Assembly (NCBI GenBank): GCA_002269645.1 | Contig: NIVC01000202.1 | Location: 310,001 to 374,000, forward strand | Length of the DNA stretch: 64,000 bases | Reading direction: 5' to 3' | Source: Macrostomum lignano | Taxonomy: Eukaryota | Part shown: positions 14,627 through 61,644 of the stretch, one piece after another | Numbering within the stretch: the stretch's first letter is position 1 | Layout: each line of letters begins with the position of its first letter | The notes under the pieces: generated by a model | Database searches by the model: none | Told to the model about the DNA's origin: nothing | The model's input: the letters and a program-made list of their open reading frames with translations, nothing else | Made by a program: the position numbers and the translations under genes

Positions 14627-15072
14627 GTGAGTCGGGTGTCTGTTGGGTTTGAGTAGAGTGTCTGTTGGGTTTGAGTAGGGTGTCTGTTGGGTTTGAGTAG
14701 AGTGTCTGTTGGGTTTGAGTAAAGTGTCTGTTGGGTTTGAGTAGAGTGTCTGTTGGGTTTGAGTAGAGTGTCTGTTGGGTTTGAGTAGAGTGTCTGTTGG
14801 GTTTGAGTAGAGTGTCTGTTGGGTTTGAGTAAAGTGTCTGTTGGGTTTGAGTAGGGTGTCTGTTGGGTTTGAGTAGAGTGTCTGTTGGGTTTGAGTAGGG
14901 TGTCTGTTGGGTTTGAGTAGGGTGTCTGTTGGGTTTGAGTAGGGTGTCTGTTGGGTTTGAGTAGGGTGTCTGTTGGGTTTGAGTAGGGTGTCTGTTGGGT
15001 TTGAGTAGGGTGTCTGTTGGGTTTGAGTAGGGTGTCTGTTAGGTTTGAGTAGGGTGTCTGTTGGGTTTGAGT
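14627..15072 (+). repeat. 22-bp minisatellite starting at the TTC29 exon 3 donor
   Basis: Unit tgagtagggtgtctgttgggtt, about 20 copies. Confidence 0.95.
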
Positions 15073-16984: not shown

Positions 16985-17310
16985 TCAGGACAGTGTCCAA
17001 TTCGGATGTCAGGACAGTGTCCAATTCGGATGTCAGGACAGTGCCCAAATTGGATGTCAGGACAGTGACCAATTAGGATGTCAGGACAGTGCATAAATTG
17101 GATGTCAGGACAGTGCCCAAATTGGATGTCAGGACAGTGACCAATTAGGATGTCAGGACAGTGCCCAAATTGGATGTCAGGACAGTGACCAATTAGGATG
17201 TCAGGACAGTGCCCAAATTGGATGTCAGGACAGTGCCCAAATTGGATGTCAGGACAGTGACCAATTAGGATGCCAGGACAGTGCCCAATTTGATGTCAGG
17301 ACAGTGCCCA
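16985..17310 (+). repeat. 24-bp minisatellite between TTC29 and WDR88
   Basis: Unit gtgcccaaattggatgtcaggaca, about 13 copies. Confidence 0.93.
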
Positions 17311-17384
17311 ATTGCTTGTTTGCAGTGACCAACCAACTGATTTATGATCGACTCTCCGTACAGCTAAAGTGCTCACAAAAACTC

Positions 17385-17855
17385 ATGCTGACGGAGCTGG
17401 AAGAAGAGACGGCCGAGCCTGGAGCGGAGCCGGAAGTGAACCCTCAAACCCAACCGGAAGCTCAGCCGGATTCAGAGGCGGACGCGCAGATCCAGCTGAC
17501 CATCCTGTCCGGACATACCGGAAGCGTGCGCACCTGCTGCTTCATTCGCAAGGACACCTGCGGCCTGTCGGCCAGCTGGGACGGCACTGCACGCCTGTGG
17601 GACGTCGGCACCGGCAAGGAGCTGCGCTGCCTCACCGGACACGCCGGCGCCAGGCTGAGCTGCGCCCGCGGCGATCCCGACGGCGGCCGGGCGGTCTCGG
17701 CCGGCTGGGACAAGGCCCTGTCCGTGTGGGACCTGGAGACCGGCGCCCGGCTGTGGCGCGGCGAGCTGGGCGGCATCGTCAGCGACGCCCGGTTTTCTGG
17801 CGGCGACGGCGGCGGCCAGCTGGTGACGGCTTCAGATCTGGACTACAATATGCAG
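17385..17855 (+). CDS. WDR88: WDR88 (PQWD) exon 1
   Basis: ILSGHTGSVRTCCF..SASWDGTARLWDV..SAGWDKALSVWDLETGARLW matches WDR88 (ILSGHEHAVSTCHF..WDLETGKLLW); CAG|GTTGG donor. Confidence 0.82.
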
Positions 17856-18111
17856 GTTGGCGAGGCTTGAAGCATCTATTTGAGCTCAGGGCTGCTTCGA
17901 ATTTTAGGTCACTTTGAGCTCAGGGTTGCTTCGAATTTTAGGTCACTTTGAGCTCAGGGTTGCTTTGAATTTTAGGTCACTTTGATCCCCTGGTACATTG
18001 AGCTCCTGGTACATTGGGCTGCTGGTACATTTACTCCTGGATGCGAGTTCCTCGCATCCGCTTTTGCTTTGCAACTCATTGTTGCAGCCTAAACCCCATT
18101 CCCCATTCCAG

Positions 18112-19364: not shown

Positions 19365-20730
19365 CGAGGGATGTTCCATAAGTACTTATACTTTTGCATG
19401 CTGCTCAGGAACTACGCAACCAATCATTGTAAGTTTTATGTCGCTGGAAAGCGGCTTTACTCATCTTTAATCTGTCGCCAAAATCATTTCGTTCTGTCAA
19501 CTATGTCAAAAGTTACAACAAAAAACGTAGTCAAAGGTCACCCATAGACTTACAAGAAATTTTCAAAATCAAAACTTCAAAGTTCAGCACGCAGAGTTAT
19601 TTCGGATTCTACATAATGCATTCTTTTTTGCTTCATAAGCGAATGCCACACCCTTTTCGTCTATGGAAAATACTGGCCTAAGCTTTCACAGCATCTTAAT
19701 CTTAAGATCACAGCATCTTAATCTTGTAAAGTTTCACCACCTTGGCTGCTGCTGCATCACCATGGATGTGAACTCAAGGGAAGGACAGCGCGCTGCAATT
19801 TTTACCCTCTGGAAACTCGGAAAAAAGCGATCAGAGATTTATGCGGATTTATGCAACATTCATGGAGCTAATGCGGTGAGCAGGATGACCGTCTACAACT
19901 GGGTTGAGCAGTTCGAAGCAGGAAGGACCAATCCTCCGGTAAAAGCTCAAAGGGACGCACATGGAAAGAAGATCATGCTGTCTCTGTTTTTCGACTGCAA
20001 TGGTCCTCTAACTGTCGAGTTTTTGGAGCCAAACACTACAATAAACTCTGAGCGCTACGTTGAAACGCTAACAAAGCTGCATCATGACATCCAGAACAAG
20101 CGTCGTGAAAATCCCAGACCTTTCATTCTTCATCATGACAATGCAAGGCCTCATACAGCACAAAAGACAGTCGAGGCAATCAGCAAGCTGAAGCTCCATC
20201 TTCTACCTCACCCTCCTTACTCTCCAGACCTGGCACCAGCAGACTTTGCTTTATTTCCAGAGTTGAAGCGCCATCTGAAAGGACGCGTGTACGAGACCAG
20301 GAACCAGATCGAGGAGGAAGTCCGCAGAATTCTGCTGTATGTCATCCCCGACAGCTGTACGCAGAAGCCATCAAAAGCATGTTTAACAGGTGGACCAAGT
20401 GCATCAACTCCGGTGGAAACTACGTTGAGAAGGTGTCGGTACCGACTGAGGATGAGTGACAAAGAAGTCAAACTTTCTGTCATCAACAACGCGCCTCTGT
20501 TTTCATGCTTGCCATTGTAGTTGTTGCTCTTTAAATTTCTTGTAAGTCTATGGGTGACCTTTGACTACGTTTTTTGTTGTAACTTTTGACATAGTTGACA
20601 GAACGAAATGATTTTGGCGACAGATTAAAGATGAGTAAAGCCGCTTTCCAGCGACATAAAACTTACAATGATTGGTTGCGTAGTTCCTGAGCAGCATGCA
20701 AAAGTATAAGTACTTATGGAACATCCCTCG
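19365..20730 (+). mobile_element. Mariner (D,D34D) element, internally deleted, with 198-bp TIRs and TA target site duplication, in WDR88 intron 2
   Basis: TA|CGAGGGATGTTCC...GGAACATCCCTCG|TA. 19365-19562 is the reverse complement of 20533-20730. Confidence 0.95.
19762..20459 (+). pseudogene. Mariner transposase pseudogene
   Basis: HTH-like N-terminus (TVYNWVEQFEAGRT) is fused directly to KKIMLSLFFD. It has HHDNARPH-x-YSPDLAPADF with 34 aa between the two D residues. The first catalytic D block is absent. After a 1-nt frameshift at about 20348 it resumes QLYAEAIKSMFNRWTKCINSGGNYVEK. Confidence 0.9.
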
Positions 20731-32420: not shown

Positions 32421-32899
32421 TTGCGAAAGTGTCGCTGAAAATACTTAAAGAAAAACCAAAGCAAAACCGATCGCTTCAACTTGCTTTAGGCTGTCCCAAG
32501 CGGCTCTGGTGGTAATTAGAACTTGGCAAAAAAGGTTTGCAGCTATTGAAGCCAACGGTAGTAAAATCGCGTTCTGAGCTGCACCATTAGTTCACCAGTT
32601 AACGCCGTGTCTGTTTTTCGGCCCCTTTCTGTGTATTTTCAGTGCCGAAAATATTAATTTATTACCTCATTTGCAGTTTAGAGAACAAACTGGCACTAAA
32701 AATTCTTTATAAGCAAAGCGTACGGGGTTGCTGAGGTATCGCCTACTAACAGTAGATGAATCAGCGCTTAGAATGCTTTTGATAAGAAATTAAAGAAAAT
32801 AGGCTACTAAAGTGGCTTTTATGCCACTCCTCGCCATCCTGTTCGCCAGCAACTGTATCTGTCTGTTTGTCTTAGTGACTGTCTGTCTGGCTTTCTTAG

Positions 32900-33165
<266 letters not shown>

Positions 33166-34181
33166 TCCGTCCAAAACTCTTGCACTCATGGCAGCAGGCA
33201 AGCAGAAGCCGGCAAAGAGCCAGCCCAGAGTAGGTTAAGTAAAAAGGCGCACTGACCAGCCCATCCGCTAAGCATCTTGGCTTTACCTCCCCTACCCTGA
33301 GCGGCTTCTATTTAGTCCTCATTTGAGCCTCAATTGGAGCACAACAAGATCTGATTTCAATCATAACAATCGCAAATAGACCTCCTTTTAGGGCTTAGGG
33401 AGAGAAACTTCCCCTCTCAAGTTTCCGTCTCAATGAGAAGCGGCTCCTCCTATTGAATTTGGCCTCTTGGCTCTTGCCGCGGGTCAGAGCTGCTAGCCAG
33501 CACCGCTCCAGTCCGATACTCCTGAGCCTCACTCAGGAAATTTCTAATTGCACAGATAGCCGGCAAAAGAAGGCCTGAGCACACTGATCCAATTTACTAG
33601 GGGCTTAAATCAATTGGAACATACAATGGAACTGGAACAATTTCAGCAAAGCAGATGAGAGATGGGAGATGGAAGAGGAGAGATGGGAGGTGAGAGATGA
33701 GAGCCGGAAAAGGAGAGATGGGAGGTGAGAGGTAGGAGTAGAGAGATGGGAGAGGAGAGATCGGAGAGGAGAGATCGGAGAGGAGAGATAGGACAGGAGA
33801 GATAAGAGAGAAGGGATTTAAGAGGACAGAGGAGAGTAGAGACGGAAGAGGAGAGATGGGAGACGGGATAGAATACGGTTTATATGAAATATAGTAGTAA
33901 AATATTAAATTCAGAAAGCAGAAGGCGATTGCGAGCCATGTGCAAAAATGGTTGGTCACAAATTTCAAAAAAAAATTGCTAGATAAAGTAAATTATTAAG
34001 CATGACACAAGAGACACGAGACTAATTTAGGAGTGCCAACCAATTGGCTGTGCCGCATGGTCTGGATTTAAAAAGTGGAGTTATAAAATTTGGAGACTTC
34101 AAAGGCAAAATTATCTTTTTTATGCATAGTACTTATCTATCCAGGTCAGCTGATTTGGTTGAATGGCCTCTATAGACGGAC

Positions 34182-36262
<2,081 letters not shown>

Positions 36263-36726
36263 ATAGGGCTGTATCGGCATCTGCACTGCAGTATTTCATG
36301 CTCCAGAAACTGCATCAAATGTGTCGGACAATTTTTTATTGCGCTAAATATTTCGCCCCACGCTTTTGAGGAATTTGGAAGGATTTACTTGTATAAAAAA
36401 ATTTGCGTTTTCACAGACTCGCGGGCGTTCGGAACGCTACAAATTCGCGAAATTTTGCTTTTCGCGAAGGGTTGCCGCTGTGGGGCTCGTCTAAGCAATT
36501 CTGCGTGTCAGTTTTTGTGGAATATCGTATCCCAATTTAATCTGAATCTGAATCCGAATCTAAATCCGAATCCGAATCGGCATTCCATCTGCAGTAGGAA
36601 CAAGCAGAGCCCATATGCCAGCCAATGACAGCTCAGCCTCAGGCAACTCCCCCTTCGCACGGATACAAAAACAGTTGCCAGGGTCCAGCGGTGCAGTAAG
36701 CAAATCAACGGTTGCAGACCATAAAA

Positions 36727-36907
36727 ATGACAGCTCATACAAAGCTTATTGATGAAGCGCAGAGACTGGATGGTGAGTCTCTCACGGACTTGCTGGATCT
36801 GAGGCTGCACTATCAAATCCAGCAGCAGCAGCAGCAACAGCAACAGCAGCGCCAAAGAAGAGCCCTTCAGAGACTCCGACGTGGGCAGACCATAGCTGAA
36901 TGCGATT
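36727..36907 (+). CDS. HCN: HCN candidate alternative first exon 1b
   Basis: ATG...MTAHTKLIDEAQRLDGESLTDLLDLRLHYQIQQQ..GQTIAECD, T|GTAAGT perfect donor. Phase 1 is compatible with 46697, and the polyQ resembles exon 2. Confidence 0.45.
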
Positions 36908-37199
36908 GTAAGTGACGGCTCAGTCAGACTTCCTGCCTCACCCATATTCTGTTAGTTGCTAAGGGGCCTGTGGAAAGCGTGCCCCCGATTCCGGCCGTAC
37001 AGCTCTGCTTTGTCTCGCTTCCGTGATGCGGTTGTTGGCCCCGTGACTTCATTGTTCACATAGCAATCAAGAGGCAGGAGATAGGTAGTGTGTGTGTCCA
37101 TAGCAAATTTTCCTGTAAAAAGCAAATATTTCAGCATCTTTTACGATGAGGCATCCTAGACAAGTCGAAAGCAAGATTTGAGTAGGCGACATTCAGTTT

Positions 37200-38974: not shown

Positions 38975-41900
38975 AACTTAAGATTGGGATCAGATCCATG
39001 GGGATTCTATATTGGGATCAGATCCATGGCGATTCGAGATTGGAATCAGATCCATGGCGATTCGAGATTGGGATCAGATCCATGGCGATTCGAGATTGGG
39101 ATCAGATCCATGGGGATTCGAGATTGGGATCAGATCTATGGGGATTCGAGATTGTGATCAGATCGATGGGGATTCGAGATTGTGATCAGATCGATGGGGA
39201 TTCGAGATTGGGATTCAGATCCATGGGGATTCTATATTGGGATCAGATCCATGGGGATTCGAGATTGGGATCAGATCCATGGGGATTCGAGATTGGGATC
39301 AGATCCATGGGGATTCGAGATTGGGATTCAGATCCATGGGGATTCTATATTGGGATCAGATCCATGGGGATTCGAGATTGGGATCAGATCCATGGGGATT
39401 CGAGATTGGGATCAGATCCATGGCGATTCGAGATTGGGATCAGATCCATGGGGATTCGAGATTGGGATCAGATCGATGGGGATTCGAGATTGTGATCAGA
39501 TCCTTTGGGATTCGAGATTGATATTAGATCCATGGCGATTCGAGATTGGAATCAGATCCATGGGGATTCGAGATTGGGATCAGATCCATGGGGATTGGAG
39601 ATTGGGATCAGATCCATGGAGATTCGAGATTGGGATCAGATCCATGGGGATTCTATATTGGGATCAGATCGATGGGGATTCTAGATTGGGATCAGATCGA
39701 TGGGGATTCGAGATTGGGATCAGATCGATGGGGATTCGAGATTGGGATCAGATCAATGGGGATTCGAGATTGGGATTAGATCCATGGGGATTCGAGATTG
39801 GGATCAGATCCAATGAGATTCGAGATTGATATCAGATCCATGGGGATTCTAGATTGGGATCAGATCCATGGAGATTCTAGATTGGGATCAGATCCATGGG
39901 GATTCGAGGTTGGGATCAGATCGATGGGGATTCGAGATTGGGATCAGATCGATGGGGATTCTAGATTGGGATTAGATCCATGGCGATTCGAGATTGGAAT
40001 CAGATCCATGGCGATTCGAGATTGGAATCAGATCCATGGCGATTCGAGATTGGGATCAGATCCATGGCGATTCGAGGTTGGAATCAGATCCATGGCGATT
40101 CGAGATTGGGATCAGATCCATGGCGATTCGAGATTGGGATCAGATCCATGGCGATTCGAGATTGGGATCAGATCCATGGCGATTCGAGATTGGGATCAGG
40201 TCCATGGGGATTCGAGATTGGGATCAGATCCATGGCGATTCGAGATTGGGATCAGATCCATGGGGATTCTATATTGGGATCAGATCGATGGGGATTCTAT
40301 ATTGGGATCAGATCCATGGGGATTCGAGATTGGGATCAGATCCATTGGGATTCGAGATTGATATCAGATCCATGGCGATTCGAGATTGGAATCAGATCCA
40401 TGGGGATTCGAGATTGGGATCAGATCGATGGGGATTCGAGATTGGGATCAGATCCATTGGGATTCGAGATTGATATCAGATCCATAGCGATTCGAGATTG
40501 GAATCAGATCCATGGGGATTCGAGATTGGGATCAGATCGATGGGGATTCTAGATTGGGATTAGATCCATGGCGATTCGAGATTGATATCAGATCCATTGG
40601 GATTCGAGATTGATATCAGATCCATGGGGATTCGAGATTGGGATCAGATCCATGGGGATTCGAGATTGGGATCAGATCCATGGAGATTCGAGATTGGGAT
40701 CAGATCCATGGGGATTCTATATTGGGATCAGATCGATGGGGATTCGAGATTGGGATCAGATCCATGGGGATTCTATATTGGGATCAGATCCATGGGGATT
40801 CGAGATTGGGATAAGATCCATGGGGATTCGAGATTGGGATCATATCGATGGGGATTCGAGATTGGGATCAGCTCCATGGGGATTCGAGATTGTGATCAGA
40901 TCGATGGGGATTCGAGATTGGGATCAGATCGATGGGGATTCGAGATTGGGATCAGATCGATGGGGATTCGAGATTGGGATCAGATCAATGGGGATTCGAG
41001 ATTGGGATTAGATCCAATGAGATTCGAGATTGATATCAGATCCATGGGGATTCTAGATTGGGATTAGATCCATGGGGATTCTAGATTGGGATTAGATCCA
41101 TGGAGATTCTAGATTGGGATTAGATCCATGGGGATTCGAGGTTGGGATCAGATCGATGGGGATTCGAGATTGGGATCAGATCGATGGGGATTCTAGACTG
41201 GGATTAGATCCATGGGGATTCGAGGTTGGGATCAGATCGATGGGGATTCGAGATTGGGATCAGATCGATGGGGATTCGAGATTGGGATCAGATCGATGGG
41301 GATTCGAGATTAGGATCAGATCAATGGGGATTCGAGATTGGGATTAGATCCATGGGGATTCGAGATTGGGATCAGATCCAATGAGATTCGAGATTGATAT
41401 CAGATCCATGGCGATTCGAGATTGGAATCAGATCCATGGGGATTCGAGATTGGGATCAGATCCATTGGGATTCGAGATTGATATCAGATTCATGGCGATT
41501 CGAGATTGGAATCAGATCCATGGGGATTCGAGATTGGGATCAGATCCATGGAGATTCTAGATTGGGATCAGATCCATGGGGATTCGAGGTTGGGATCAGA
41601 TCGATGGGGATTCGAGATTGGGATCAGATCGATGGGGATTCTAGATTGGGATTAGATCCATGGCGATTCGAGATTGGAATCAGATCCATGGCGATTCGAG
41701 ATTGGAATCAGATCCATGGCGATTCGAGATTGGGATCAGATCCATGGCGATTCGAGGTTGGAATCAGATCCATGGCGATTCGAGATTGGGATCAGATCCA
41801 TGGCGATTCGAGATTGGGATCAGATCCATGGCGATTCGAGATTGGGATCAGATCCATGGCGATTCGAGATTGGGATCAGGTCCATGGGGATTCGAGATTG

Positions 41901-43470
41901 GGATCAGATCCATGGCGATTCGAGATTGGGATCAGATCCATGGGGATTCTATATTGGGATCAGATCGATGGGGATTCTATATTGGGATCAGATCGATGGG
42001 GATTCGAGATTGGGATCAGATCGATGGGGATTCGAGATTGGGATCAGATCGATGGGGATTGGAGATTGGGATCAGATCCATGGAGATTCGAGATTGGGAT
42101 CAGATCCATGGGGATTCTATATTGGGATCAGATCGATGGGGATTCGAGATTGGGATCAGATCGATGGGGATTCGAGATTGGGATCAGATCGATGGGGATT
42201 CGAGATTGGGATCAGATCAATGGGGATTCGAGATTGGGATTAGATCCATGGGGATTCGAGATTGGGATCAGATCCAATGAGATTCGAGATTGATATCAGA
42301 TCCATGGGGATTCTAGATTGGGATCAGATCCATGGAGATTCTAGATAGGGATCAGATCCATGGGGATTCGAGGTTGGGATCAGATCGATGGGGATTCGAG
42401 ATTGGGATCAGATCGATGGGGATTCTAGATTGGGATTAGATCCATGGCGATTCGAGATTGGAATCAGATCCATGGCGATTCGAGATTGGAATCAGATCCA
42501 TGGCGATTCGAGATTGGGATCAGATCCATGGCGATTCGAGGTTGGAATCAGATCCATGGCGATTCGAGATTGGGATCAGATCCATGGCGATTCGAGATTG
42601 GGATCAGATCCATGGCGATTCGAGATTGGGATCAGATCCATGGCGATTCGAGATTGGGATCAGGTCCATGGGGATTCGAGATGGGGATCAAATCCATGGC
42701 GATTCGAGATTGGGATCAGATCCATGGGGATTCGAGATTGGGATCAGATCGATGGGGATTCTATATTGGGATCAGATCCATGGGGATTCGAGATTGGGAT
42801 CAGATCCATGGGGATTCGAGATTGATATCAGATCCATGGCGATTCGAGATTGGAATCAGATCCATGGGGATTCGAGATTGGGATCAGATCGATGGGGATT
42901 CGAGATTGGGATCAGATCCATTGGGATTCGAGATTGATATCAGATCCATGGCGATTCGAGATTGGAATCAGATCCATGGGGATTCGAGATTGGGATCAGA
43001 TCGATGGGGATTCTAGATTGGGATTAGATCCATGGCGATTCGAGATTGATATCAGATCCATGGGGATTCTAGATTGGGATTAGATCCATGGAGATTCTAG
43101 ATTGGGATTAGATCCATGGGGATTCGAGGTTGGGATCAGATCGATGGGGATTCGAGATTGGGATCAGATCGATGGGGATTCTAGATTGGGATTAGATCCA
43201 TGGGGATTCGAGGTTGGGATCAGATCGATGGGGATTCGAGATTGGGATCAGATCGATGGGGATTCGAGATTGAAATCAGATCGATGGGGATTCGAGATTG
43301 GGATCAGATCCATGGGGATTCGAGATTGGGATCAGATCCATGGGGATTCGAGATTGGGATCAGTTCCATGGGGATTCGAGATTGGGATCAGATCCATGGG
43401 GATTCGAGATTGGGATCAGATCCATGGGGATTCGAGATTGGGATCAGATCCATGGGGATTCGAGATTGTG
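38975..43470 (+). repeat. 28-bp satellite, about 160 copies, with higher-order blocks
   Basis: Unit gggatcagatccatggggattcgagatt. Confidence 0.98.
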
Positions 43471-43842
43471 ATCACAGACACTTGGGATTTGAGTAATCTA
43501 GGGCTTTCAACTTGCGATGAACTTCTAGGGATTCTAGGAAGGAGATTAAACCCTCCCCCAAAAATCGTCCCAATTGGCTGCAACCAATGAAGCATTCGCT
43601 TACATCGCCTTACGCCGCCCACCTCTAATGCTATTTATTGTCTAAAGCTAAGGATTGGAGGAAATGGCATAGAAACTAACGTACGTCATTATCCAAGAAT
43701 TGTGTTCTATTGAAAATAAATAAATATTACGAGCATAAAAACTGTGTCGACAAAGTCAGGTGAGAGTGTCTCTTAAATACCTAAGGGTCAGTTCACTTGA
43801 GTTAATAACAAATATTTTTATCTTTTTGGCGGGGGTCGTTTG

Positions 43843-46245: not shown

Positions 46246-46696
46246 AAGAGAGATGCAAGAGTGCCATCCGACAGCCGGGAAAAAGAGTTAAAGAAGATAG
46301 CCCTTAAGGAGTGACTAATGATGAGAAAGAGGAAAAGAAGAAAATTAAAGCCATATATTGAACATGCGGGAAATGGAATAATTTTAAAGTAATTCCCCAT
46401 GTCCGAAATTTTTCGAAAAGTCTACCACTAATAAGGACTTATCCTAGCTTAATATTGTATAAAGCATTACTATGCCCAAGTTCATTAAGGATTTGCACTT
46501 CTTTCCTTGATAGAGGAAGGCAATGAGAGAGAGATGAGACGTGGTACTTGATCAGAGGTGTGAGCGGCAGCGGCTTGTTAGCGGGGGTGGGTCGGGCAGA
46601 TGAAAGAGAAAGTGTCAAAGTAAAGATAAGATTGGGCAGTTGGAAGATTCACCTCCTCTCACGCTGAGCCCCCCCCCCGTTCTCACCCCTGCTCAG

Positions 46697-47109
46697 GCAC
46701 GGAGTCGCCTTCCCTGTTGGACCGGAGCGACTCGCTGCCAGTGGACGACCTGGGGATGGGCGAGCGGCTGCAGGCCGGCTTCATTGGCCAGCAGCAGGGG
46801 AGGCGGTCAGCGAGGCAGCCGCAGCCGCTGCTACAACAGCCGGCCCCGTCGCTGCTGCCACCGCCGCCGCTGCCACCGCCTCCGAGTTCAGCCGGGCACA
46901 GACGAGGCAGTTTCCAGTCGATGCGAACCCACAGCCTGGACCAGCAGCAGCAGCAGCAGCAGCAGCAGGCAGAGGGCGGTACGGATGGACTCGCCGCCGC
47001 CTCCGCAGCCGACTGCAACAACGGCAAGATGGCGTCAAAATCGATGGATTCGTGTCTGGACGATCCGATGTCTTCGACTGATGGACAGCAGATTCAGCAG
47101 CCGGTGCCT

Positions 47110-47145
<36 letters not shown>

Positions 47146-47558
47146 TTGCTGCGCAAGAAGCGTCCCAGCCTCCGGATGAAGCTCGGCCGCTTCGGCTCTG
47201 GCCGGCAATTCGGCCGGAGCGGCAGCGGCAGCGGCAGCGGCGGAGTTGGCAACTCAACGGAGGCACCGGCTGGCGACGAGGCCGAAGTCGGCGAGGACTC
47301 CCCGCTGAGGGACCAGCAGCAGCAGCAGCAAGGAGCAACATCCGCAACCGCAGTTGGCGACGATCTCGAACTCGGCGAGCTGGAGGACCCGAAGCAGAGC
47401 ACGTCCAGCTACCTCAAGGAGCAGTTCTTCGCCTTCTTCCAGCCGTCCGACAACAAGCTGGCCATGAAGCTGTTCGGCAACAAGAACGCCCTGCTGAAGG
47501 AGAAGCGCCGGCAGCAGCAGAGCGGCAAATGGATCATCCACCCGTGCAGCAACTTCAG
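46697..47558 (+). CDS. HCN: HCN/Ih channel exon 2 (polyQ N-terminus plus HCN domain)
   Basis: GCTCAG acceptor. It encodes SYLKEQFFAFFQPSDNKLAMKLFGNKNALLKEKRRQQQSGKWIIHPCSNFR, the diagnostic HCN-domain motif. AG|GTAGGC donor. Confidence 0.95.
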
Positions 47559-47959
47559 GTAGGCTGAGAGAACCGCTCGGAATAAAAGTACAAAAGCGCC
47601 GGTGCACCGCAGTAGTGGCAATCAATTTCTGTGCCACGCGACAAAAAACACAAAAGATGCGCAGGAAATGAGGAGGCGAAGAAGAAGAGGAGAAGAGGGA
47701 GGAAAAGTCGACACTCGGGTCTTTTGGCTGCCTCTTCCGTTTTTTTGCTTTGAACAGCAACAGAAAATGTTGAAACCCGAAACTGCGTGTTGAGAAACCG
47801 GAGAGAAAAATGGATTATAAGACGAACCCCGGTCGAATGAAGACTTGAAACAACTGGTTGGGGGGGTTGCTTAATCACTGCAGAAGTCCCTAGCGAGGGC
47901 CGGTGCGCGCAGATAAATGACCGAATGCCATGGCTAAGTAATAATAATGATAATAATTG

Positions 47960-48215
47960 ATTACACCTGCCCTAATTGGGCCAGATGTGCAACCGACAGC
48001 TCAGCCGCAGCTATTGCGCGGCGCATCTGAAGGCTGCGTACGGCTGTTCAGTCCAAGGACTGGGGGGTCGCCACACACAGCCTCAATTACCCCAGCTAAT
48101 GCTGGCACCAGAGTTGTGTCTCGCTCAAGGACACAAATTGTTCCGAGTGGGATCGGGAATCGAACCCCCGACCTTCAAGTCTTGAGTCCGACGCTCTAGT
48201 CACTAGGCTACAGCC
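47960..48215 (-). mobile_element. SINE family 1 copy (about 35-bp deletion in the core)
   Basis: Same head and body as 23294 and 57549; (ata)n tail at 47941-47958. Confidence 0.88.
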
Positions 48216-48999
48216 CCCTGGCTAAGTAAAGTAGATAGGAAAACTGTTGCAGTCGACCTCCATCAATTTTTGCCATAGACAACTCCGGTAGAGAAACATC
48301 TCCAACACTGCACAAGAAAGATTGGAACTGCTAAAAGTTTGCCATAAGTTTTCTTGCTTACTATCTCCGGTTACATCTCATAAAGAATGATCACTTCATA
48401 AACTTGTGACTCCACCTCGAACGATAAGAAGTTGATATTTTGTGAATCTTGTGCAACGGAATTTTCAGGATCTGTGTCCAGTTCTGCTTTAGCAGTCCAT
48501 GTTCGATCCATACTAGCAGGATATCCGAAAATTGCCCGTCCAGTTCCCGCCAATGACGCTTACACTTCTGATGAAATTGCTTGGGGCTACTGATGGGGCT
48601 GCCCCAGCAACATTTTTCATTTCTCAGTCTGAAGCCAGCCTTGCCTGCCTCTGGCTGATTGCCAGTCAGCGGATTCTGCTTCCGCAAGAGAAAAGTCTGG
48701 TGGATTAATCAGATTAGAGTGAAAGGTTGCTTCGGCACCTCTGCTTTCTGCCAAATCTCTCTCTAAATGGTTTTTATTTTGACCCTGCCAAATTTTGATT
48801 GGCGCCTGATGGTGAATTGTGAGGAATATTTATGCAGGCTCCGGCACTCGACAACTTAACAAGGCTAAGTGTGTGCCGGTTGGTTTTTAAGTGTCTGCTT
48901 GTGCTTCGTAGTATGACTTCTAACAGAACATGACGCTTCATTTTAACAAAGATCCGATTCATAATTTACAAAAAGATTAGTTAGATAAGATAAAAAATA

Positions 49000-50670: not shown

Positions 50671-50992
50671 CTATACGAGCGTATTCGAAATTCGACCATT
50701 TGTTAACTGCCTTCCGAGGTTTTGAGTAACAATCCGCCCTGACGTACCCTTCTGTGTGCTCAGGCGTCAGCGGAATGGGCATGGACTGCTTAAAAATCTG
50801 TTTTGTATATTCTTTTAATGCTAATTTACAGTATAGGTTTAGCTAATAGGGAGTTTCTAGTGAAGACCCTTTCTGCTGACATACTTTTTACTTTCCACAT
50901 GTGTACACAGATAAGTGTACGAGTACACACTCCGTGCCCTTAGGGTTAATCCCGTTGAGCTCACTTAGCTCGTAATTCCTTTTATATTGCAG

Positions 50993-51156
50993 ATTCTATT
51001 GGGACTTGCTAATGCTGGTGCTGCTAATCACCAACCTGGTTGTGCTGCCCGTGGCCATCTCATTTTTCAACGATGACCTCAGCCCGCAATGGATCATTTT
51101 CAATTGCGTGTCAGACACTATTTTCCTCAGCGATATTGCCGTCAACTTTCGGACTG
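50993..51156 (+). CDS. HCN: HCN exon 3 (S1-S2)
   Basis: RFYWDLLMLVLLITNLVVLPVAISFFNDDLSPQWIIFNCVSDTIFLSDIAVNFRTG; TTGCAG and GTGAGG sites. Confidence 0.96.
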
Positions 51157-51969
51157 GTGAGGCCATTTCTTCTATTGGCTGAGGGAGAGAAAAAGGGGTG
51201 TTGGGCTAGGGACGGCGGAGAATTTGGCCAGCGCTGATTGGCTAGGAAGGGAAAGAGTTTTATGATCCGAGGGTAAAAAAGGCAGACGGGCTCCGATTGG
51301 CTGGGGGTGCTTTCAAAGTTTAGAGCACATTTTCTGGTTTACTCCTTCTTTTGTAAACGCCTTCGCAACAGATCCCAGGAGCATACTAAATGCATCGTCG
51401 ATTACGATAGGCTCGTAAATATACGTTCCAAAGACTACTCAAGTAGAAGGACGGGACACTAATTTTCTTGGAAAAAATTAGGAGAATGGCTTTACCAAAA
51501 AAAATATACATTACAGAGAATGGAGATTTTCATTTTTCAGCACAACAATTGTTATTGCTTTCGATAGGAGGCAGACCTAATTTTCATCTTTTGATATGAC
51601 TTGACTTTCCTATATAGCTCTATTGATATTCATTTAGCTTTTTGTTCAGCAAATTAAGATTCTATGCTAATTTTATATCATACGTACATTAAAGGACAGT
51701 GATAAATGTTATCACTGGGTTTTAATACCTTCAGCACAGCCTCACTGACAGAACTGAGTAAAGCGAATGATGCAGTCGAACACCTACTCAACTCGGCCCT
51801 TATGTCGAGAGCACTTTTCTATAGCCCTCCAATAGCTACTTCACGCTTCAGTTGACCCATCGACCTCTCAGCTTGTGTTATGCCCGCCCCCACTCAAGAC
51901 ACTAATCAGCCCTCAGCTGCAACCCTCCATCAACTCTCCTCTCCACTCTTCTCCTCCGCTGTTCTGCAG

Positions 51970-52137
51970 GCGTCATCACTAACGATTTTGCGGAGGAGAT
52001 TGTACTTGATCCGAAAATGATCGCCCAGCACTACATGAAGTCCTGGTTCTTCCTCGACCTAATCTCGTCCATTCCCATGGACTATATTTTCCTGGTGCTG
52101 AACCAGCGGAACAATATGAGCCAACTGATGCACGCAG
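51970..52137 (+). CDS. HCN: HCN exon 4 (S3)
   Basis: EEIVLDPKMIAQHYMKSWFFLDLISSIPMDYIFL; phases consistent. Confidence 0.96.
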
Positions 52138-52194
52138 GTAAAAAAACCTGAAATTGATTAACATTTTATATGAATGACAACTAATTTACTAGAG

Positions 52195-53545
52195 AGCAGC
52201 CAATCAGAGGATAACTGACAACCCAATACACCAGTGTCATTCTCTACCCCTGTCCAGCCAATTAGAGGCTAACTGACAACCCAATACACCAGTGTCATTC
52301 TCTACCCCTGTCCAGCCAATTAGAGGCTAACTGACAACCCAATACCCCAGTGTCATTCTCTGCCCCCGTCCAGCCAATCAGAGGCTAACTGACAACCCAA
52401 TACACCAGTGTCATTCTCTACCCCTGTCCAGCCAATCAGAGGCTAACTGACAACCCAATACCCCAGTGTCATTCTCTGCCTCCGTCCAGCCAATCAGAGG
52501 CTAACTGACAACCCAATACCCCAGTGTCATTCTCTACCCCCGTCCAGCCAATCGGAGGCTAACTGACAACCCAATACCCCAGTGTCATTCTCTGCCCCTG
52601 TCCAGCCAATCAGAGGCTAACTGACAACCCAATACCCCAGTGTCATTCTCTACCCCTGTCCAGCCAATCAGAGGCTAACTGACAACCCAATACCCCAGTG
52701 TCATTCTCTACCCCTGTCCAGCCAATCAGAGGCTAACTGACAACCCAATACCCCAGTGTCATTCTCTGCCCCCGTCCAACCAATCAGAGGCTAACTGACA
52801 ACCCAATACCCCAGTGTCATTCTCTACCCCTGTCCAGCCAATCAGAGGCTAACTGACAACCCAATACCCCAGTGTCATTCTCTACCCCTGTCCAGCCAAT
52901 CAGAGGCTAACTGACAACCCAATACCCCAGTGTCATTCTCTGCCCCCGTCCAGCCAATCAGAGGCTAACTGACAACCCAATACCCCAGTGTCATTCTCTG
53001 CCCCCGTCCAGCCAATTAGAGGCTAACTGACAACCCAATACCCCAGTGTCATTCTCTGCCCCCGTCCAGCCAATTAGAGGCTAACTGACAACCCAATACC
53101 CCAGTGTCATTCTCTGCCCCTGTCCAGCCAATCAGAGGCTAACTGACAACCCAATACCCCAGTGTCATTCTCTGCCCCAGCCCAGCCAATCAGAGGCTAA
53201 CTGACAACTCAATACCCCAGTGTCATTCACTGCCCCAGCCCAGCCAATCGGAGGCTAACTGACAACCCAATACCCCAGTGTCATTCTCTGCCCCTGTCCA
53301 GCCAATCGGAGGCTAACTGACAACTTAATACCCCAGTGTCATTCTCTGCCCCAGCCCAGCAAATCGGAGGCTAACTGACAACCCAATACCCCAGTGACAT
53401 TCTCTGCCCCAGCCCAGCCAATCAGAGGCTAACTGACAACCCAATACCCCAGTGTCATTCTCTGCCCCAGTCCAGCCAATCAGAGGAAAACTGACAACCC
53501 AATACCCCAGTGTCATTCTCTACCCAGCGCAGCCAATCAGGGGGC
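52195..53545 (+). repeat. 58-bp minisatellite in HCN intron 4
   Basis: Unit ccaatcagaggctaactgacaacccaataccccagtgtcattctctgcccccgtccag, about 23 copies. Confidence 0.97.
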
Positions 53546-53582: not shown

Positions 53583-53680
53583 GTCGAGCCCTGAGAATCC
53601 TGCGTCTAGCGAAGCTGCTCAGTCTGCTGCGGCTGCTTCGACTCTCCCGATTGGTCCGCTACGTCAGCCAATGGGAGGAA
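53583..53680 (+). CDS. HCN: HCN exon 5 (S4 voltage sensor)
   Basis: [33 protein letters not shown]; GTGAGT donor, phase 0. Confidence 0.97.
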
Positions 53681-54266: not shown

Positions 54267-54416
54267 TTTTTTCAAATAGCCAGCAAATGCTTCGGCATCA
54301 TCAAGCTGGTGCTCATTATGATGCTGCTGGGACACTGGAACGCCTGCTTCCAGTTTCTGATACCGTTTCTAAACGATTTCCCGCCGGACTCCTGGGTGGC
54401 TAAGCGCGGACTGAAG
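54267..54416 (+). CDS. HCN: HCN alternative exon 6a (S4-S5 linker/S5)
   Basis: 150 nt, TTTCAG/GTGACA, open: FFQIASKCFGIIKLVLIMMLLGHWNACFQFLIPFLNDFPPDSWVAKRGLK. Confidence 0.88.
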
Positions 54417-55755
54417 GTGACAAAAATCTGTGCAGGCTACTTATAGTAGCTTATTGGATGGCTGCCTCTGGATCGGTGCTGATCGTGTGGGGGCAGGGGT
54501 TTATAGCCAGCCCCCAGATTCTGCACCAACCCTCCCAGCCTCTCTGGACTGATGAAGGCGATGCATGACGCCGTAGCCTTCTAATCCAAGGATTTCTAAC
54601 GAGCAACAGGACTGAACGCGGACTCCTTTAAACGTCTGGACTAGAAATGAGCCGGTCTGCTGTTAATGATGAAGATGGTTGAAAAATAACTCTTTTTTAT
54701 AAGTTTTTATAGCAAATTAGGATAATAACTGATAGCCCCAAATGGTTTAATTTGGGCTTTTTCGGCTCATTTCTAGTCTCTAAGTGTTTAAAGGTCCATG
54801 GCCAAATTAAAAAAACTTGAAGAACAAGTTCATGGACCACTGGTCTCTAATGAGTTAAATAATTAACTTTTATTTGAAAGCTCAATTTCGATTCAAAAAA
54901 TGTATTTCTTAGAAATACGATGGAGGCTGGTAAGGAATGTGCGTTTGTCGAGAAGGGAAAAAACTCGAGAACGCATAGCGCTGAATGGGGTTTGGCCATA
55001 GACAAATTCGGTTAAGAATTAATCCGATTTCTCGAGAGCATGCGAAATGCACTGGCGATGTGACAGCTCAATGTTCAATGTTCTGAGGTCACATTTCGCA
55101 GGTTTATCGAGTATGGTTTAGGAAAAAATGCAAAAACGATAACAACTGTTCCCATCTCTTTGAAGCGAAATGATCGCTTTAAATAGAATATCCATAATTT
55201 TTGTGTTAAGGTTGCAAATCTTCTTAGAGGTAGGAAATTCGGCCTTAGTTTTTTTTTAAAAAGTTCTTAAACTTTAGTTATTTTAATTAACAGTCCTTGC
55301 TTCTAACTCGGAAGATCCCTGGATTGGAAGCGTCAAGTCCAGTTTGGCTGTTATTCAGTATGTAGCCCAGTAGCTATCGCTATTTTCTCTGGCAGTTTTC
55401 GAAGCGTCAGTGGCAGGATTAGGGATTGGATATTGAATTCTAAGAATTCCACTTATTGCCGAACACCCACTCAGACGGTGTTGATCACCCAGGGAGAAGC
55501 GAAGCATCAACACAAATGATTCGGGAGTCCCCGATGTTTTTTGCACTTTCATAGCTTTGTTGTTCCTACTGATTTTTTCTCTAGCAAATGCCATTCTAAG
55601 AAGCACTTGACGAGCTTTGTTTGTTTTTTTAATTTTAATTGTTGCTGATCAAGACATTAATGCTATTGATAATTGTGTGATCCGCGCACCGACATAATGT
55701 GCTTATATAAGTCCGTCCTACCCTAGCAACGCGCACTCAAAACCCTCGCTTTCAG

Positions 55756-55905
55756 CTGCTGAACGTTGCCAATAAATTTATGGGAATATTTAATCTCGTG
55801 CTGCTCATGCTGCTGCTTGGCCACTGGAACGCCTGTCTGCAGTTTCTCATCCCGTTTCTGCAAGAGTTCCCAGACCAATCCTGGGTGTCTCGCTGCGGAC
55901 TCAAG
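55756..55905 (+). CDS. HCN: HCN alternative exon 6b (S4-S5 linker/S5)
   Basis: 150 nt, TTTCAG/GTGAAT, open: LLNVANKFMGIFNLVLLMLLLGHWNACLQFLIPFLQEFPDQSWVSRCGLK. Confidence 0.9.
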
Positions 55906-56717
55906 GTGAATTTGCCCCTCCTCCTGGCGCTTGTTGCCATGGCGATGAAGCGTCGATATCGCAATAAATATCGCATGCGACAATTCCTTGCAAGTTTCGA
56001 AGCGTTGATGCAGCAGTTTAGGACTGGAGGGGAGTTTTGTTGGTGCGCACATCTGCACCTAATTGGAGCGCACGGATGTACATGTACTGAGCAAAAGGGT
56101 TGGACCACCAATATGATCAAGCGCACTATACGAGCGTATCATATACACATGTTTACATGCAAGCTCGTCCGCATTTTGTGCAAAACTGCTTCATTCACAG
56201 CGACACCATTGAACAATAGTTTTCTGGGCCAGTGGTGCACAAATTGCACAATAAAATATTTAAGCGTAAAATTTCCGAAAGATACAATAAATATGCTAAG
56301 CATACCATTGAAACTTGGGCCCAATTTCATAGAACTCTTTGATGTATATTTATCAGCTCTCTAAACAGAGTTTTGCCCGCAGCCCTCCTAAATTTGGCTC
56401 CCAACCGATCTGAAAGCGTCTAGGGGACTGGTTGCCAAGTTGTTCATGAAATCGGGCCCTGGAGCATGCAGCATTGGTTATAAATGGCAATATTAATTTG
56501 CTTAATGCATCCCAGTTGTTTATGCTTGCACTTCTCTTGACCTATTTTATATACAGCAGCTTGTCTATATCGCATACACTGTCTGCAGAAGTACTTGTTG
56601 CTACCCTAATTTGGTGCCGATAACTTTTTTACCCTGCGTGAAAACAAGTTTTTAACCCTATTGATCATTTGAAGTGGGCGGTGATTTCGGGGCGCGAATC
56701 CCGCCACGCACTTTCAG

Positions 56718-56867
56718 CTGCTGAACGTTGCCTCCGTGTTCATGCGGGTGGCCAACCTCATCTGCCTGATGCTGCTGCTGGCGCACTGGAACGGCTGCTT
56801 GCAGTTCTTGGTGCCGGCGATTCAGGACTTTCCCAAGGACTCTTGGGTTAAGAAGCTGAACATGCAG
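56718..56867 (+). CDS. HCN: HCN alternative exon 6c (S4-S5 linker/S5, canonical type)
   Basis: 150 nt, TTTCAG/GTAGAG, open: [50 protein letters not shown]. Confidence 0.92.
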
Positions 56868-57548
56868 GTAGAGCCGCCGCAGCTGCCCCTCCTTAAACCA
56901 GACTTTCAAAATCGGATCTTGTTGCACCTTGAGTTCTGTTTTTTTCTTTCAATTTTATTACCTGTATAAACCCATGTTTTTGTTTGTTTATTTATTATGT
57001 GGACAAGGTCAGCCTATCACCAGATTATTTTATTGCCTCACTAACTTTGCTTAGTCATATAGATGTGAAACCAGGCAATAATTCATAATTAAGGTGCAGT
57101 TTATCGAGGCACCATCGAGCGGTAGGACCTGGGCTCGAATCCTGACAGGGGATCTTCAAGGAAGTCACCTTTCGGAAAATACCAGAGGCAATACGGTGGC
57201 CTGCTACGCATCCACGTGTACAGTTTCCATGTGTCCCGAGTACACAACACAGGCGCACAGAACTAACATTTGGCCTCATATTTTTAACAACTAACCGAAA
57301 AAGAACTGCAGCAAAAGTAGCCAATTAACAAGCAGCCTCACCAATGAAAATTTTCTCGACACTGCATTATTTTCAAATCAATTATTCTGCGCCTATATAC
57401 ACCGCCACTTTCTAGTCATACTGCTTTCGGTTATTTAACTTGTTTTGCGACACATAATTCGCATTATCATTTTCAGATTTTTAAGCAAGCATATTAGCAG
57501 TGCCAGTAATCACATATTTATTTTCGCTATGAATACAATAATCTAAGC

Positions 57549-57886
57549 ATTAGCCTAGTGGTTAGAGCGTCGGACCCACGACTTGAAGGTCGGGGGTTCG
57601 ATTCCCGATCCCACTGGAACAATTTGTGTCCTTGAGTAAGACATTGAACTCTGCATTGCTTCAGTTCACCCAGCTGTAAAATGGGTGCCAGCATTAGCTG
57701 GGGTAATTGATGGTGTGTGTGGCGACCCCCCAGTCCTTGGACTGAACAGCCGTACGCAGCCTTCCGATGCGCCGCACAATAGCTGCGGCTGAGCTGTTGG
57801 TTGCACATCTGCCCAATAGGGAAGGTGTAATAAATTATTATTATTATTATTATTATTAATATTATTATTATTATTATTATTATTAG
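57549..57886 (+). mobile_element. SINE family 1, near full length with (TAT)n tail
   Basis: TAGCCTAGTGG (A-box), GGTTCGATTCC (B-box), tgtgtccttgagtaag...cagttcacccagctgtaaaatggg (CORE-like), 3' gtgtaat(aat/tat)n. Confidence 0.92.
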
Positions 57887-58894
57887 TAATGTATGTAGAA
57901 ATCAAAATCAAGAACTATATTATTAGTTTATCAGTAGTTTCCATCCACTGTTATTGCCATAACATTGCCATAATTGCCAAAACATAACATCCTATAAAGA
58001 AGTATAGAATTTTTGCTGACCAATTTGAAACGCTGCGACCTGGGATTGTCACACTGTGACCTGGGATTGTCACACTGTGATCTGGGATTGTCACACTGTG
58101 ATTTAGGAGTGACTTAACACGGCGATTTATGCGACTGTCTCATTTTCGATCGTAAATAAAGCTTGTGAAATGGCCTTTCCCAATGGACAAATGGCATTTC
58201 GGAGCGCTTTTTTCAATGGTTGATTTTGTTAAATTTTATGCAAGCACACTAAAACCGCACTTGATAAAGCATGCACCGCATAGTGCTTGCAAAAAGCATA
58301 TATAGCTGCATGCCGATAGAACCATGTTTCCGCAATCATCGCAGTGTGTACAGTTTTAAAATTGTTGAGATTATGAGAGCTTTAAATCTGAAAAGTTCAA
58401 AAAAAAGTTTTTTTTACAAACGACGCTTCGAAATTTGCCAACGCAACGGTCTTCGTTTCTGTAGCGGCCTCTCAGGCTTCGCAATGTTTGAGTGCAGTAA
58501 GAGGCATCTGTCAGGACGCAGGCTGACTCTGGTTGCTAGATCATAAAGTCCTGGAAATCTGTGGGGTTTGGACGATAAACTGGGTGCTGGTTCGGATTGA
58601 AAATCGATAATGTTAACTAAATTTTGGCTTGGTATTTCTGCCGTTAATTTGACTTAATAAAACAAGAAACCTGCCATGAGACCGCAGCTGCAGCGAAGGC
58701 CTTGCGAACCCCTTGCCCCCCCCCCTGAACACCCTACCTAACGATATTACTAGCTAACTCTCTCATTTTATTAACCAATTTATGTATAACTTCTGATACA
58801 AATCGTTGAATCGAATTTTCCCAACCCACCCCGTCCTCCAATCGAAATTTTCTCAAACACACAAACAACACGCGAACGTCAACAACTGGACCAG

Positions 58895-59113
58895 GAGGCG
58901 CACTGGTTCCGCCAGTACACCTGGGCACTGTTTAAAGCCATGAGCCACATGCTCAGCATTGGCTACGGGCAGCATCCGCCGACCAGCATCAGCGAGGCCT
59001 GGATCACCATTGTCAGCATGATGACCGGCTCCTCATGCTACGCCCTGTTCGTTGGACACGCGGCCGCTCTGATACAGAGCTTCGACACGTCAAAACGGCT
59101 GTACAGGGAGAAG
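58895..59113 (+). CDS. HCN: HCN exon 7 (pore helix, GYG filter, S6)
   Basis: [67 protein letters not shown]. Confidence 0.97.
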
Positions 59114-59375: not shown

Positions 59376-59522
59376 TTCAAGCAAGTGGAGGAGTACATGG
59401 CCTACCGCAAGCTGCCGAGAGCGCTTCGCCAAAGGATTGCGAACTATTACGAGCATCGGTATCAGGGCAAGATGTTCAATGAGAACGACATCCTCAGCGA
59501 GCTGTCCGAATGCCTTAGAGAG
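59376..59522 (+). CDS. HCN: HCN exon 8 (C-linker)
   Basis: [49 protein letters not shown]. Confidence 0.97.
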
Positions 59523-59681: not shown

Positions 59682-59925
59682 CAAATCATCAACTATAACT
59701 GCCGCGCCTTGGTGGCGGCCGTGCCCTTCTTCACCTACGCCGATCAGGACTTTGTCTCCGAAGTGGTCACCAGGCTCAAATACGAGGTGTTCCAACCGGG
59801 CGATCTGATTATCAAGGAGGGCACCATCGGCACCAAGATGTACTTTATTCAAGAGGGCATTGTTGACATCATCACTCGTGATGGGGAGGTGGCAACGAGC
59901 CTGTCCGATGGGTCCTACTTTGGCG
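59682..59925 (+). CDS. HCN: HCN exon 9 (CNBD)
   Basis: [49 protein letters not shown]. Confidence 0.97.
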
Positions 59926-61057: not shown

Positions 61058-61644
61058 AGATCTGTCTGCTGACAAACGCCAGACGAGTGGCCAGCGTCCG
61101 TGCTGAGACCTATTGCAACCTGTACTCGCTGGAGCGGGAGAACTTTCTCTCGGTGCTGGACAATTACCCGCTAATGCGACGCACCATGGAGTCCGTGGCG
61201 GCTGAGCGGCTCAGCAAGATCGGCCAGAACCCGCAGCTTGTGAGCAGCCGAGCCGATCTCAAAGAGGACCTCAACCTGGTGAAGGAGATTGTCAACCAGG
61301 TGACCCCGGCCACCAGCGATGACAACGACGATAGCTGCGGCGGAGGCGCCGGCGCCGGTGCGTGCGGAGGCAGCGCGGTCTGTGGCGACGGCAAAAAGTC
61401 GTCTCCGCCGCACACAGAGCGCCGGAAGTCGGTGGTGAAACTCGGCCTGCAGAAGCTTGGCCTGTCCTCCAAGTCCAAGTCCAGAGGCAACCTGTTCGCC
61501 AATTTCCACCTGGGCGGCCACCATCATCAGCAGCATCAGAACCAAGATCCCAGCGGGGCGTCAACTTCGCAACAGCCGCCCGGTTACGAGGCGGCCACTT
61601 CGGACCAGAGAGAAATCGCCACGGACAAAGAGTCGGCAGTCTGA
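61058..61644 (+). CDS. HCN: HCN exon 10 (CNBD phosphate-binding cassette, C-terminus)
   Basis: EICLLTNARRVASVRAETYCNLYSL..YPLMRRTMESVAAERLSKIG; TGA at 61642-61644. With exon 1a and one exon 6 the CDS is 2727 nt (908 aa). Confidence 0.97.

Follow-up and report, generated by a model that had tools for sequence, protein, structure and literature searches.

The 64,000-nucleotide stretch of Macrostomum lignano DNA analyzed here (contig NIVC01000202.1, positions 310,001 to 374,000 of the forward strand; hereafter the window) carries an HCN (Ih) channel gene in which 3 homologous exons, 6a, 6b, and 6c, stand in tandem between the exon encoding the S4 voltage sensor and the exon encoding the pore. 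The explanation that we favor as a whole, with a probability of roughly 0.6, is that these exons form a one-of-three cassette for the S5 helix and that the choice among them may be made by competing RNA pairings between a candidate docking site and 2 candidate selectors in the cassette introns. The positions of all exons and elements are given in Table 1.

The identity of the gene was analyzed with protein, structure-database, and domain searches. A query composed of the S4, 6c, and pore exons gave flatworm HCN proteins as its best matches in the protein search, with full-length identities of 65% at most, and the region from S4 to S6 aligned with human HCN4 and HCN1 in a PDB sequence search with E values of approximately 1e-61. 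Pfam detected the Ion_trans_N domain (PF08412, E = 1.7e-23) in the exon at 46690–47559, and the selectivity filter reads SIGYG, the same as in other flatworm HCN proteins. From residue 402 onward, the sequence of the M. lignano protein PAA85143.1 (P0331) is encoded without any difference in the window, stop codon included, and this product contains PF08412, PF00520 (Ion_trans), and PF00027 (cNMP_binding). Judged by its domain set, its SIGYG pore, and the alignment with HCN4 and HCN1, the gene is confirmed as the HCN channel predicted from the DNA letters in an earlier, sequence-only reading of this stretch, and the flatworm source supposed in that reading is likewise correct. It extends at least from 36718 to 61644 on the forward strand.

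Each of the 3 cassette exons is 150 nucleotides (nt) long, in phase 0-0, and free of stop codons. All have GT-AG splice sites, with the acceptor ctttcag in each case and the donors gtgaca, gtgaat, and gtagag for 6a, 6b, and 6c, respectively. The sequence-only reading had described 3 such exons with intact TTTCAG/GT sites; its coordinates proved exact to the base. The encoded peptides (FFQIASKCFGIIKLVLIMMLLGHWNACFQFLIPFLNDFPPDSWVAKRGLK for 6a and LLNVANKFMGIFNLVLLMLLLGHWNACLQFLIPFLQEFPDQSWVSRCGLK for 6b) match one another and that of 6c in tblastn with E values of 1e-13 to 1e-18, and the exons are 44–62% identical in amino acids and 58–69% identical in nucleotides. Every exon encodes the same module, namely, the cytoplasmic end of S4 with the S4-S5 linker, the whole S5 helix, and the first residues of the turret between S5 and the pore. 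The cassette corresponds approximately to residues 284–337 of human HCN1, with a flatworm linker that is shorter by 4 residues (PDB sequence alignment). Length, frame, splice-site conservation, and homology are the properties from which mutually exclusive exons are predicted (PMC3228551), and 6a, 6b, and 6c agree with one another in all of them. Since the introns between the variants measure 1339 nt (6a-6b) and 812 nt (6b-6c), steric exclusion cannot apply. A relaxed-threshold tblastn search of the whole window returned 3 S5-like segments and 1 pore exon, with no fourth, degenerate S5 copy and no second pore exon. The acceptor regions of 6b and 6c share a further peculiarity: 22 nt across the 6b acceptor (55749–55770, forward strand; CTTTCAGCTGCTGAACGTTGCC) are 100% identical to 56711–56732 across the 6c acceptor, even though overall identity between the 2 exons is only 59%; in 6a the corresponding sequence is different. 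The shared 22 nt may have arisen by gene conversion over a short stretch, or they may serve both exons as a splice-regulatory element.

To characterize the divergence of the exons, we compared them by codon position and between genomic copies. Identity among the 3 exons was highest at second positions (76–92%), followed by first positions, and by far lowest at third positions (38–46%); between 6a and 6b, for instance, 46 of 50 second, 35 of 50 first, and 22 of 50 third positions are identical. The ratios of nonsynonymous to synonymous substitution (dN/dS, Nei-Gojobori method) were 0.20, 0.47, and 0.23, with saturated dS, so that the comparison proposed along with the sequence-only reading returned no neutral value. 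The DNA of the copies has thus diverged while the protein pattern was kept, as that reading had held. The same order and spacing of S4, 6a, 6b, 6c, and pore exons was found in the window and on 2 other M. lignano sequences, NIVC01000689.1 (L008) and NIVC01000344.1 (L009). In the comparisons of the window with these copies, the exons carried 0 and 1 substitutions per 450 nt, and all peptides were identical, the sole exon difference among the 3 copies being a silent change in 6a of L009. The 4 introns carried 158 substitutions in 4541 nt (3.5%) and 122 in 4561 nt (2.7%), and at the 3.5% rate approximately 16 changes per 450 nt would be expected. Because the exons diverged in a coding pattern and show near-zero substitution next to approximately 3% in the introns, the suggestion that purifying selection maintains all 3 of them is supported by these alignments. 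Two differences in the other copies were also recorded. Both GenBank copies lack approximately 150 nt (approximately 155 gap columns) that the window has at 54864–55073 in its 6a-6b intron, the one holding candidate selector A, and the gene model on NIVC01000689.1 is split into 2 genes, the first of which ends in the intron after 6c.

Transcript-derived models give evidence of how the cassette is used. PAA85143.1 runs from the end of the S4 exon (QWEE) through 6a directly to the pore exon (EAHWFRQ), skipping 6b and 6c. A profile search with the 3 cassette exons retrieved a second M. lignano protein, PAA78447.1 (P0217), which clusters with PAA85143.1; in it QWEE is joined to 6c, from which the model reads on into the intron, and 6a and 6b are skipped. 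Each of the 2 models therefore holds exactly one cassette exon. The only sources of the Mlig_3_7 GenBank annotation were RNA-seq data and transcripts assembled de novo, with open reading frames (ORFs) called by TransDecoder (PMC5730564), and because it is transcript-only, the 6a and 6c junctions in these models reflect RNA. On this evidence, we regard it as very probable that the cassette is real and that at least 2 of its variants are used singly. Double inclusion would add a second S5 and omission of all variants would delete S5, and both products stay in frame. Because the cassette exons are multiples of 3, nonsense-mediated decay is unable to remove double inclusions, a point on which the sequence-only reading was right. 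That reading went on to claim strict mutual exclusion. The single use of 6a and of 6c agrees with this claim, but its strictness is not proven and a 6b transcript is missing from the models; that all 3 variants are used and that exclusion is strict is probable rather than certain.

A repeat scan of the cassette showed that 58422–58440, in the last cassette intron, is complementary to the direct-repeat copies 55390–55408 and 55990–56005 (inverted repeats I7 and I14; direct repeat D12). These segments are the candidate docking site and the candidate selectors A and B of Table 1. Selector A can form 18 base pairs (bp) with 1 mismatch with the docking site (−30.6 kcal/mol), and selector B can form 18 bp (−28.9 kcal/mol), both duplexes occupying the same docking nucleotides (58421–58440). 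Allowing up to 1 mismatch, the 12-mer core GTTTCGAAGCGT occurs only at these 3 sites in the 64 kb, and the docking site is its sole match on the reverse strand. Pair counts tolerant of G-U in 16-nt windows gave many chance matches and were replaced by a weighted ungapped score, which was used together with dinucleotide shuffles, an empirical null distribution drawn from the remaining window sequence, and global folds. The statistic, one site pairing with sites in 2 different other introns, is neutral as to arrangement. The observed score was reached by 7 of 500 dinucleotide shuffles when duplex length was unlimited; for duplexes of at most 22 nt, a limit set after seeing the data, none of 500 shuffles reached the observed 41 (top shuffle, 38). 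Of 211 overlapping placements elsewhere in the window, 10 reached the score; 9 of these (score 55) extend over 2 complementary microsatellites, (TCTG)n and (AGAC)n, and the tenth (score 42) starts at 30820. When the 4478 nt between the 6a donor and the pore acceptor were folded without constraints, the minimum-energy structure contained the duplex of the docking site and selector A, spanning 3 kb; folding of the 2989 nt that begin at the 6b donor gave the duplex with selector B. The docking site and selector A are invariant across the 3 genomic copies, and a single change is present at the edge of selector B. The idea that the 3 elements are parts of a long transposon or repeat was ruled out, as their flanks do not align.

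According to the mechanism that we propose, the docking site would pair with one of the 2 near-identical selectors at a time. The pairing would loop out the later variants, bring the donor of the chosen exon near the pore exon, and shorten the effective intron, and without pairing the proximal exon 6c would be used as the default. Each mRNA would take one of the 3 exons, which would give up to 3 channels differing only in the packing of helices against the voltage sensor and the gate. From the predicted duplexes and folds, it is possible, although a little short of an even chance, that pairing between the docking site and the selectors decides exon choice.

Several observations weigh against this reading. 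No selector was detected after 6c, where a control segment gave −7.9 kcal/mol, and the intron between S4 and 6a is without pairing above chance. Nor does the model account for the skipping of 6a (and 6b) where splicing selects a later variant. The 3 elements are copies of one sequence, 2 forward and 1 reverse, and RNA pairing is therefore inseparable from a shared protein-binding motif or a repeat remnant; no covariation was seen in the near-identical M. lignano copies, the only ones compared. The stricter shuffle result depends on the post hoc 22-nt limit. On the transcript side, none of the transcript models searched contains 6b, the 2 informative models sit on different genomic copies, so that alternation within one copy is not strictly shown, and PAA78447.1 ends in a retained intron, leaving the 6c-to-pore junction undocumented. 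Finally, that the 3 isoforms would differ in gating is deduced only from the position of S5 in HCN structures.

Part of this evidence fits an alternative in which the cassette is real and spliced one exon at a time, but tissue-specific splicing factors or promoter or kinetic effects make the choice. The match among the 20-nt elements would then be fortuitous, would reflect a protein-binding motif common to them, with TTCGAA as its palindromic core, or would remain from the duplication or from a small inverted-repeat element. Apart from the common sequence of the elements, it is favored by the weak similarity of selectors A and B for approximately 20 nt further downstream, as remnants of a duplicated unit would show, by the modest result of the unrestricted shuffles, and by the absence of a selector for 6c together with the unexplained skipping of upstream variants; the 22 nt shared across the 6b and 6c acceptors, moreover, suggest a splice site recognized by a common factor. 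Nevertheless, both duplexes are long (18 bp) and strong (approximately −29 to −31 kcal/mol), they overlap on the same docking nucleotides, the layout is the one expected for a downstream docking site, the pairings are present in the global minimum-energy folds, and the 64 kb contain no further occurrence of the core. We therefore consider the choice by splicing factors or kinetics unlikely, although it deserves to be kept in mind.

Other sequences with pairing potential lie in and next to the gene. A repeat of approximately 300 nt with a tRNA-like part is present at 47930–48235 (forward strand) in intron 2 and at 57545–57860 (reverse strand) in the intron between 6c and the pore exon. The 2 copies are 87% identical; by pairing, they could close a loop of approximately 9.3 kb in the pre-mRNA that contains the entire cassette together with the exons for S1-S4. 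ARAGORN called no tRNA in this repeat pair. Just upstream of the first HCN exon seen, (TCTG)n at 32858–33171 and 2 kb of (AGAC)n at 34174–36261 have the strongest long-range pairing potential of the window.

The standing of 6b was evaluated by comparison with other flatworms. A single 150-nt S5 exon of the GHWNAC type was found in 5 loci of parasitic flatworms (Paragonimus heterotremus, Paragonimus westermani, Taenia solium, Opisthorchis viverrini, and Schistosoma mattheei), and a single S5 exon also in a flatworm-like contig (L010) and in the leech Helobdella. Exon 6b is 72–80% identical in amino acids to 6 of 7 parasite exons and 78% identical to L010; with S. mattheei its identity is 66%, tied with that of 6a. 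The values against the parasite exons and L010 are 60–66% for 6a and 50–62% for 6c. We infer that 6b is also used because it is intact, unchanged between copies, and orthologous to the only S5 exon of parasitic flatworms. Its absence from both transcript-derived models would be accounted for if only some of the exons were functional and 6b were a silent relic that is never spliced in. This is improbable, as 6b has intact splice sites and an open frame, carries no substitutions in 150 nt in each comparison of the window with another copy while neighboring introns differ by 1.5–3.5% (window versus L008), most resembles the sole S5 exon in 6 of 7 parasitic-flatworm exons and in L010, and is followed by a selector element after 84 nt.

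Less probable still is a division of labor between gene copies of the polyploid DV1 genome, one copy always using 6a and another always 6c. The 6a model is indeed placed on NIVC01000344.1 and the 6c model on NIVC01000689.1. However, each of the 3 copies retains the complete set of cassette exons, splice sites, and pairing elements, and the exons are near-identical, so that short reads can hardly be assigned and the placement of isoforms by the assembler would be close to arbitrary, given the annotation method (PMC5730564). That the 3 exons are an assembly artefact of joined alleles or paralogous loci, which the sequence-only reading had named as its own refutation and to which a redundant, repeat-rich assembly might lend itself (PMC5730564), can be excluded for practical purposes, because the same arrangement recurs in the window and on 2 independent GenBank scaffolds, the exons are only 58–69% identical in DNA with unrelated introns, and one transcript model splices across the array.

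In a neighbor-joining tree of the 50-amino-acid exons, 6a and 6b group with the parasite exons (bootstrap 56–61%) and 6c falls outside; 6c resembles the canonical exon of other phyla. The tree weakly suggests that the split between canonical and derived exons is older than the divergence of macrostomids and parasitic flatworms, with the parasites keeping only the derived copy. Tandem S5 exons were also detected outside flatworms. In the annelid Lamellibrachia satsuma (L006), an exon of the GHWNAC type (9977–10126) is followed by one of the GHWNGC type (13543–13692), and contig L007 contains 2 S5 exon copies 42 nt apart. At least 15 cluster representatives are read-through ORFs with 2 S5 stretches, most of them of the arthropod type HWSGC with spacers of 24–60 nt; a protein-database search with an arthropod-type exon of 50 amino acids gave no candidates. 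This sample is biased, in that only short, stop-free spacers can be read through, and "arthropod-type" denotes the HWSGC motif shared with insect sequences, with no named arthropod genome behind the label; in the Ranatra chinensis locus, the S5 exon was not reached within the 10 kb examined. These two-copy cassettes resemble that of M. lignano in that the corresponding 150-nt exon, with phase and position unchanged, is tandemly duplicated. They differ from it in having 2 copies instead of 3, and in that spacers of 24–60 nt, prevalent in the arthropod-type cases, would sterically block splicing between the S5 copies, whereas the flatworm introns of 812 and 1339 nt would not. The distribution is patchy, with one copy in Helobdella, the 5 parasite loci, and L010. 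Taken together, a scenario in which an RNA switch picks one of 3 S5 modules, the split of 6c from 6a and 6b predates the divergence of macrostomids and parasites, the latter kept the derived exon, and S5 swapping recurs in protostomes as a means, not described so far, of tuning pacemaker channels is, with all its parts combined, rather doubtful. The recurrence of tandem S5 exons in annelid and arthropod-type HCN genes suggests that annotations routinely miss or mis-join the alternative exon.

Two further observations concern these loci. In L. satsuma, a 17-nt complementary pair (L006, 13381–13397 and 13834–13850) lies on either side of the second S5 exon, the canonical one, which it could loop out; the best compact pairing there scores 38, a value not calibrated by shuffling, versus 41–42 in M. 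lignano. The public model of P. westermani (L002, P0014) joins S4 straight to the pore exon, omitting S5.

Mutually exclusive exons are established in other channel genes, among them exons 5N/5A of SCN1A and SCN8A, exons 8/8a of CACNA1C, and those of Drosophila para. The IS4 a/b alternative exons of Drosophila cacophony belong with them (PMC11828482). Like these sodium and calcium channel clusters, the M. lignano cassette consists of tandem homologous exons of the same length and phase that swap one transmembrane module, a design that yields different gating from one gene. It differs in the module, here the S5 helix and S4-S5 linker of an HCN channel, and in having 3 copies rather than the usual 2. 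Competing RNA structures of the docking-site/selector kind control exon choice in insect Dscam1 exon 6, 14-3-3 xi, and Mhc (for related work on Dscam1, see PMC8791459, PMC3535345, and PMC7430681). The M. lignano elements share with them one intronic site beside a constitutive exon that is complementary to sites beside several variable exons, with overlapping pairings, and their geometry resembles the 14-3-3 xi type, in which the docking site lies downstream and the selectors follow the variants. They depart from these systems in that only 2 of the 3 variants have a selector and in being known from sequence alone, without cross-species covariation. We know of no docking-site/selector system in flatworms, although the search for one was not exhaustive.

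According to 2 papers that summarize Gisselmann et al. 2005 (PMC4382183 and PMC3344876), Drosophila Ih is spliced into variants whose N-termini, S3-S4 loops, and S4-S5 loops vary in length. As in M. lignano, a single invertebrate HCN gene is thereby diversified by splicing between S3 and S5, but through changes in loop length and not through a swap of S5. Two proteins of our set taken as insect HCN proteins, P0312 and P0303, differ by an insert between S4 and S5. Full-text literature searches for mutually exclusive exons in HCN (hyperpolarization-activated) channels found no published S5 exon swap, the original papers on the Drosophila Ih and lobster PIIH splice variants lying outside the search. 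The sequence-only reading is borne out in the main, but the novelty that it suspected in the three-way cassette has to be tempered, since two-copy forms are widespread in other protostome HCN genes; no published description was found of either form. What is new here is a three-way S5 cassette of an HCN channel in a flatworm; mutually exclusive exons in ion-channel genes were already known.

Table 1. Exons of the HCN gene and candidate RNA-pairing elements (positions in the window; CNBD, cyclic nucleotide-binding domain)
Feature	Position	Strand	Basis or remark
First HCN exon seen	36718–36909	+	Residues 1–64 of PAA85143.1 (N-terminally partial); tblastn, 100% identity
Large N-terminal exon, poly-Q rich, Ion_trans_N at its end	46690–47559	+	tblastn; Pfam PF08412
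Exon from S1 to the start of S2 (RFYWDLLML...NFRTG)	50991–51158	+	tblastn
S2-S3 exon	51967–52138	+	Boundaries approximately ±2 nt; exact peptide match 51969–52139
S4 voltage-sensor exon	53583–53680	+	Ends ...RYVSQWEE, phase 0, donor gtgagt
Cassette exon 6a (GHWNAC type)	54267–54416	+	Used in model PAA85143.1
Candidate selector A (CTGGCAGTTTTCGAAGCGTCA)	55389–55409	+	973 nt after 6a donor
Cassette exon 6b (GHWNAC type)	55756–55905	+	Absent from transcript models examined
Candidate selector B (TGCAAGTTTCGAAGCGTTGA)	55989–56008	+	84 nt after 6b donor
Cassette exon 6c (AHWNGC, canonical type)	56718–56867	+	Used in model PAA78447.1
Candidate docking site (CGACGCTTCGAAATTTGCCAA)	58421–58441	+	454 nt upstream of pore-exon acceptor
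Exon for pore helix, selectivity filter (SIGYG), and S6, phase 0-0	58895–59113	+	Exact peptide match
C-linker exon	59376–59522	+	Exact peptide match
C-linker/CNBD exon	59682–59925	+	Exact peptide match
Last coding exon, end of CNBD and C-terminus	61058–61644	+	Stop TGA 61642–61644; tblastn, peptide match

The remainder of the window is dense in mini- and microsatellites, with 33 Tandem Repeats Finder rows scoring at least 200 (for example, 12342–13801, 34174–36261, 38981–43474, and 52197–53540). An array of 23 units of 58 bp nearly fills the intron before the S4 exon, and one of 160 units of 28 bp covers 4.5 kb. This density is consistent with the repeat-rich genome described for M. lignano (PMC5730564). 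On the forward strand, 4802–6154 holds an uninterrupted ORF of 450 amino acids in a stretch of 62% G+C; it contains a full SKIP/SNW domain (PF02731, E = 2.7e-66) and is probably an intron-poor SNW1 homologue. Also on the forward strand are a remnant of a mariner/Mos1-type transposase (19663–20520; PF01359, HTH_48) and, in the region preceding the HCN gene, ORFs that resemble exons and encode TPR and WD40 repeats (14066–14656 and 17304–17870). Rfam and tRNA scans of the window gave no matches.

S5 packs against S4 and S6, and structural models of HCN channels now place it within the interface through which the voltage sensor is coupled to the gate and to which the reversed polarity of these channels is due. 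A channel that comes with 3 natural S5 modules and is otherwise the same would constitute a ready-made experiment on the coupling of voltage to the gate, in an animal for which transgenesis is available (PMC5730564). The cassette would also show diversification of a pacemaker channel by splicing, where vertebrates instead have 4 HCN genes. If the RNA-pairing element is functional, docking-site/selector control of mutually exclusive splicing would be extended to flatworms, and with 2 selectors and 1 docking site the M. lignano gene would offer a small, testable model of it.

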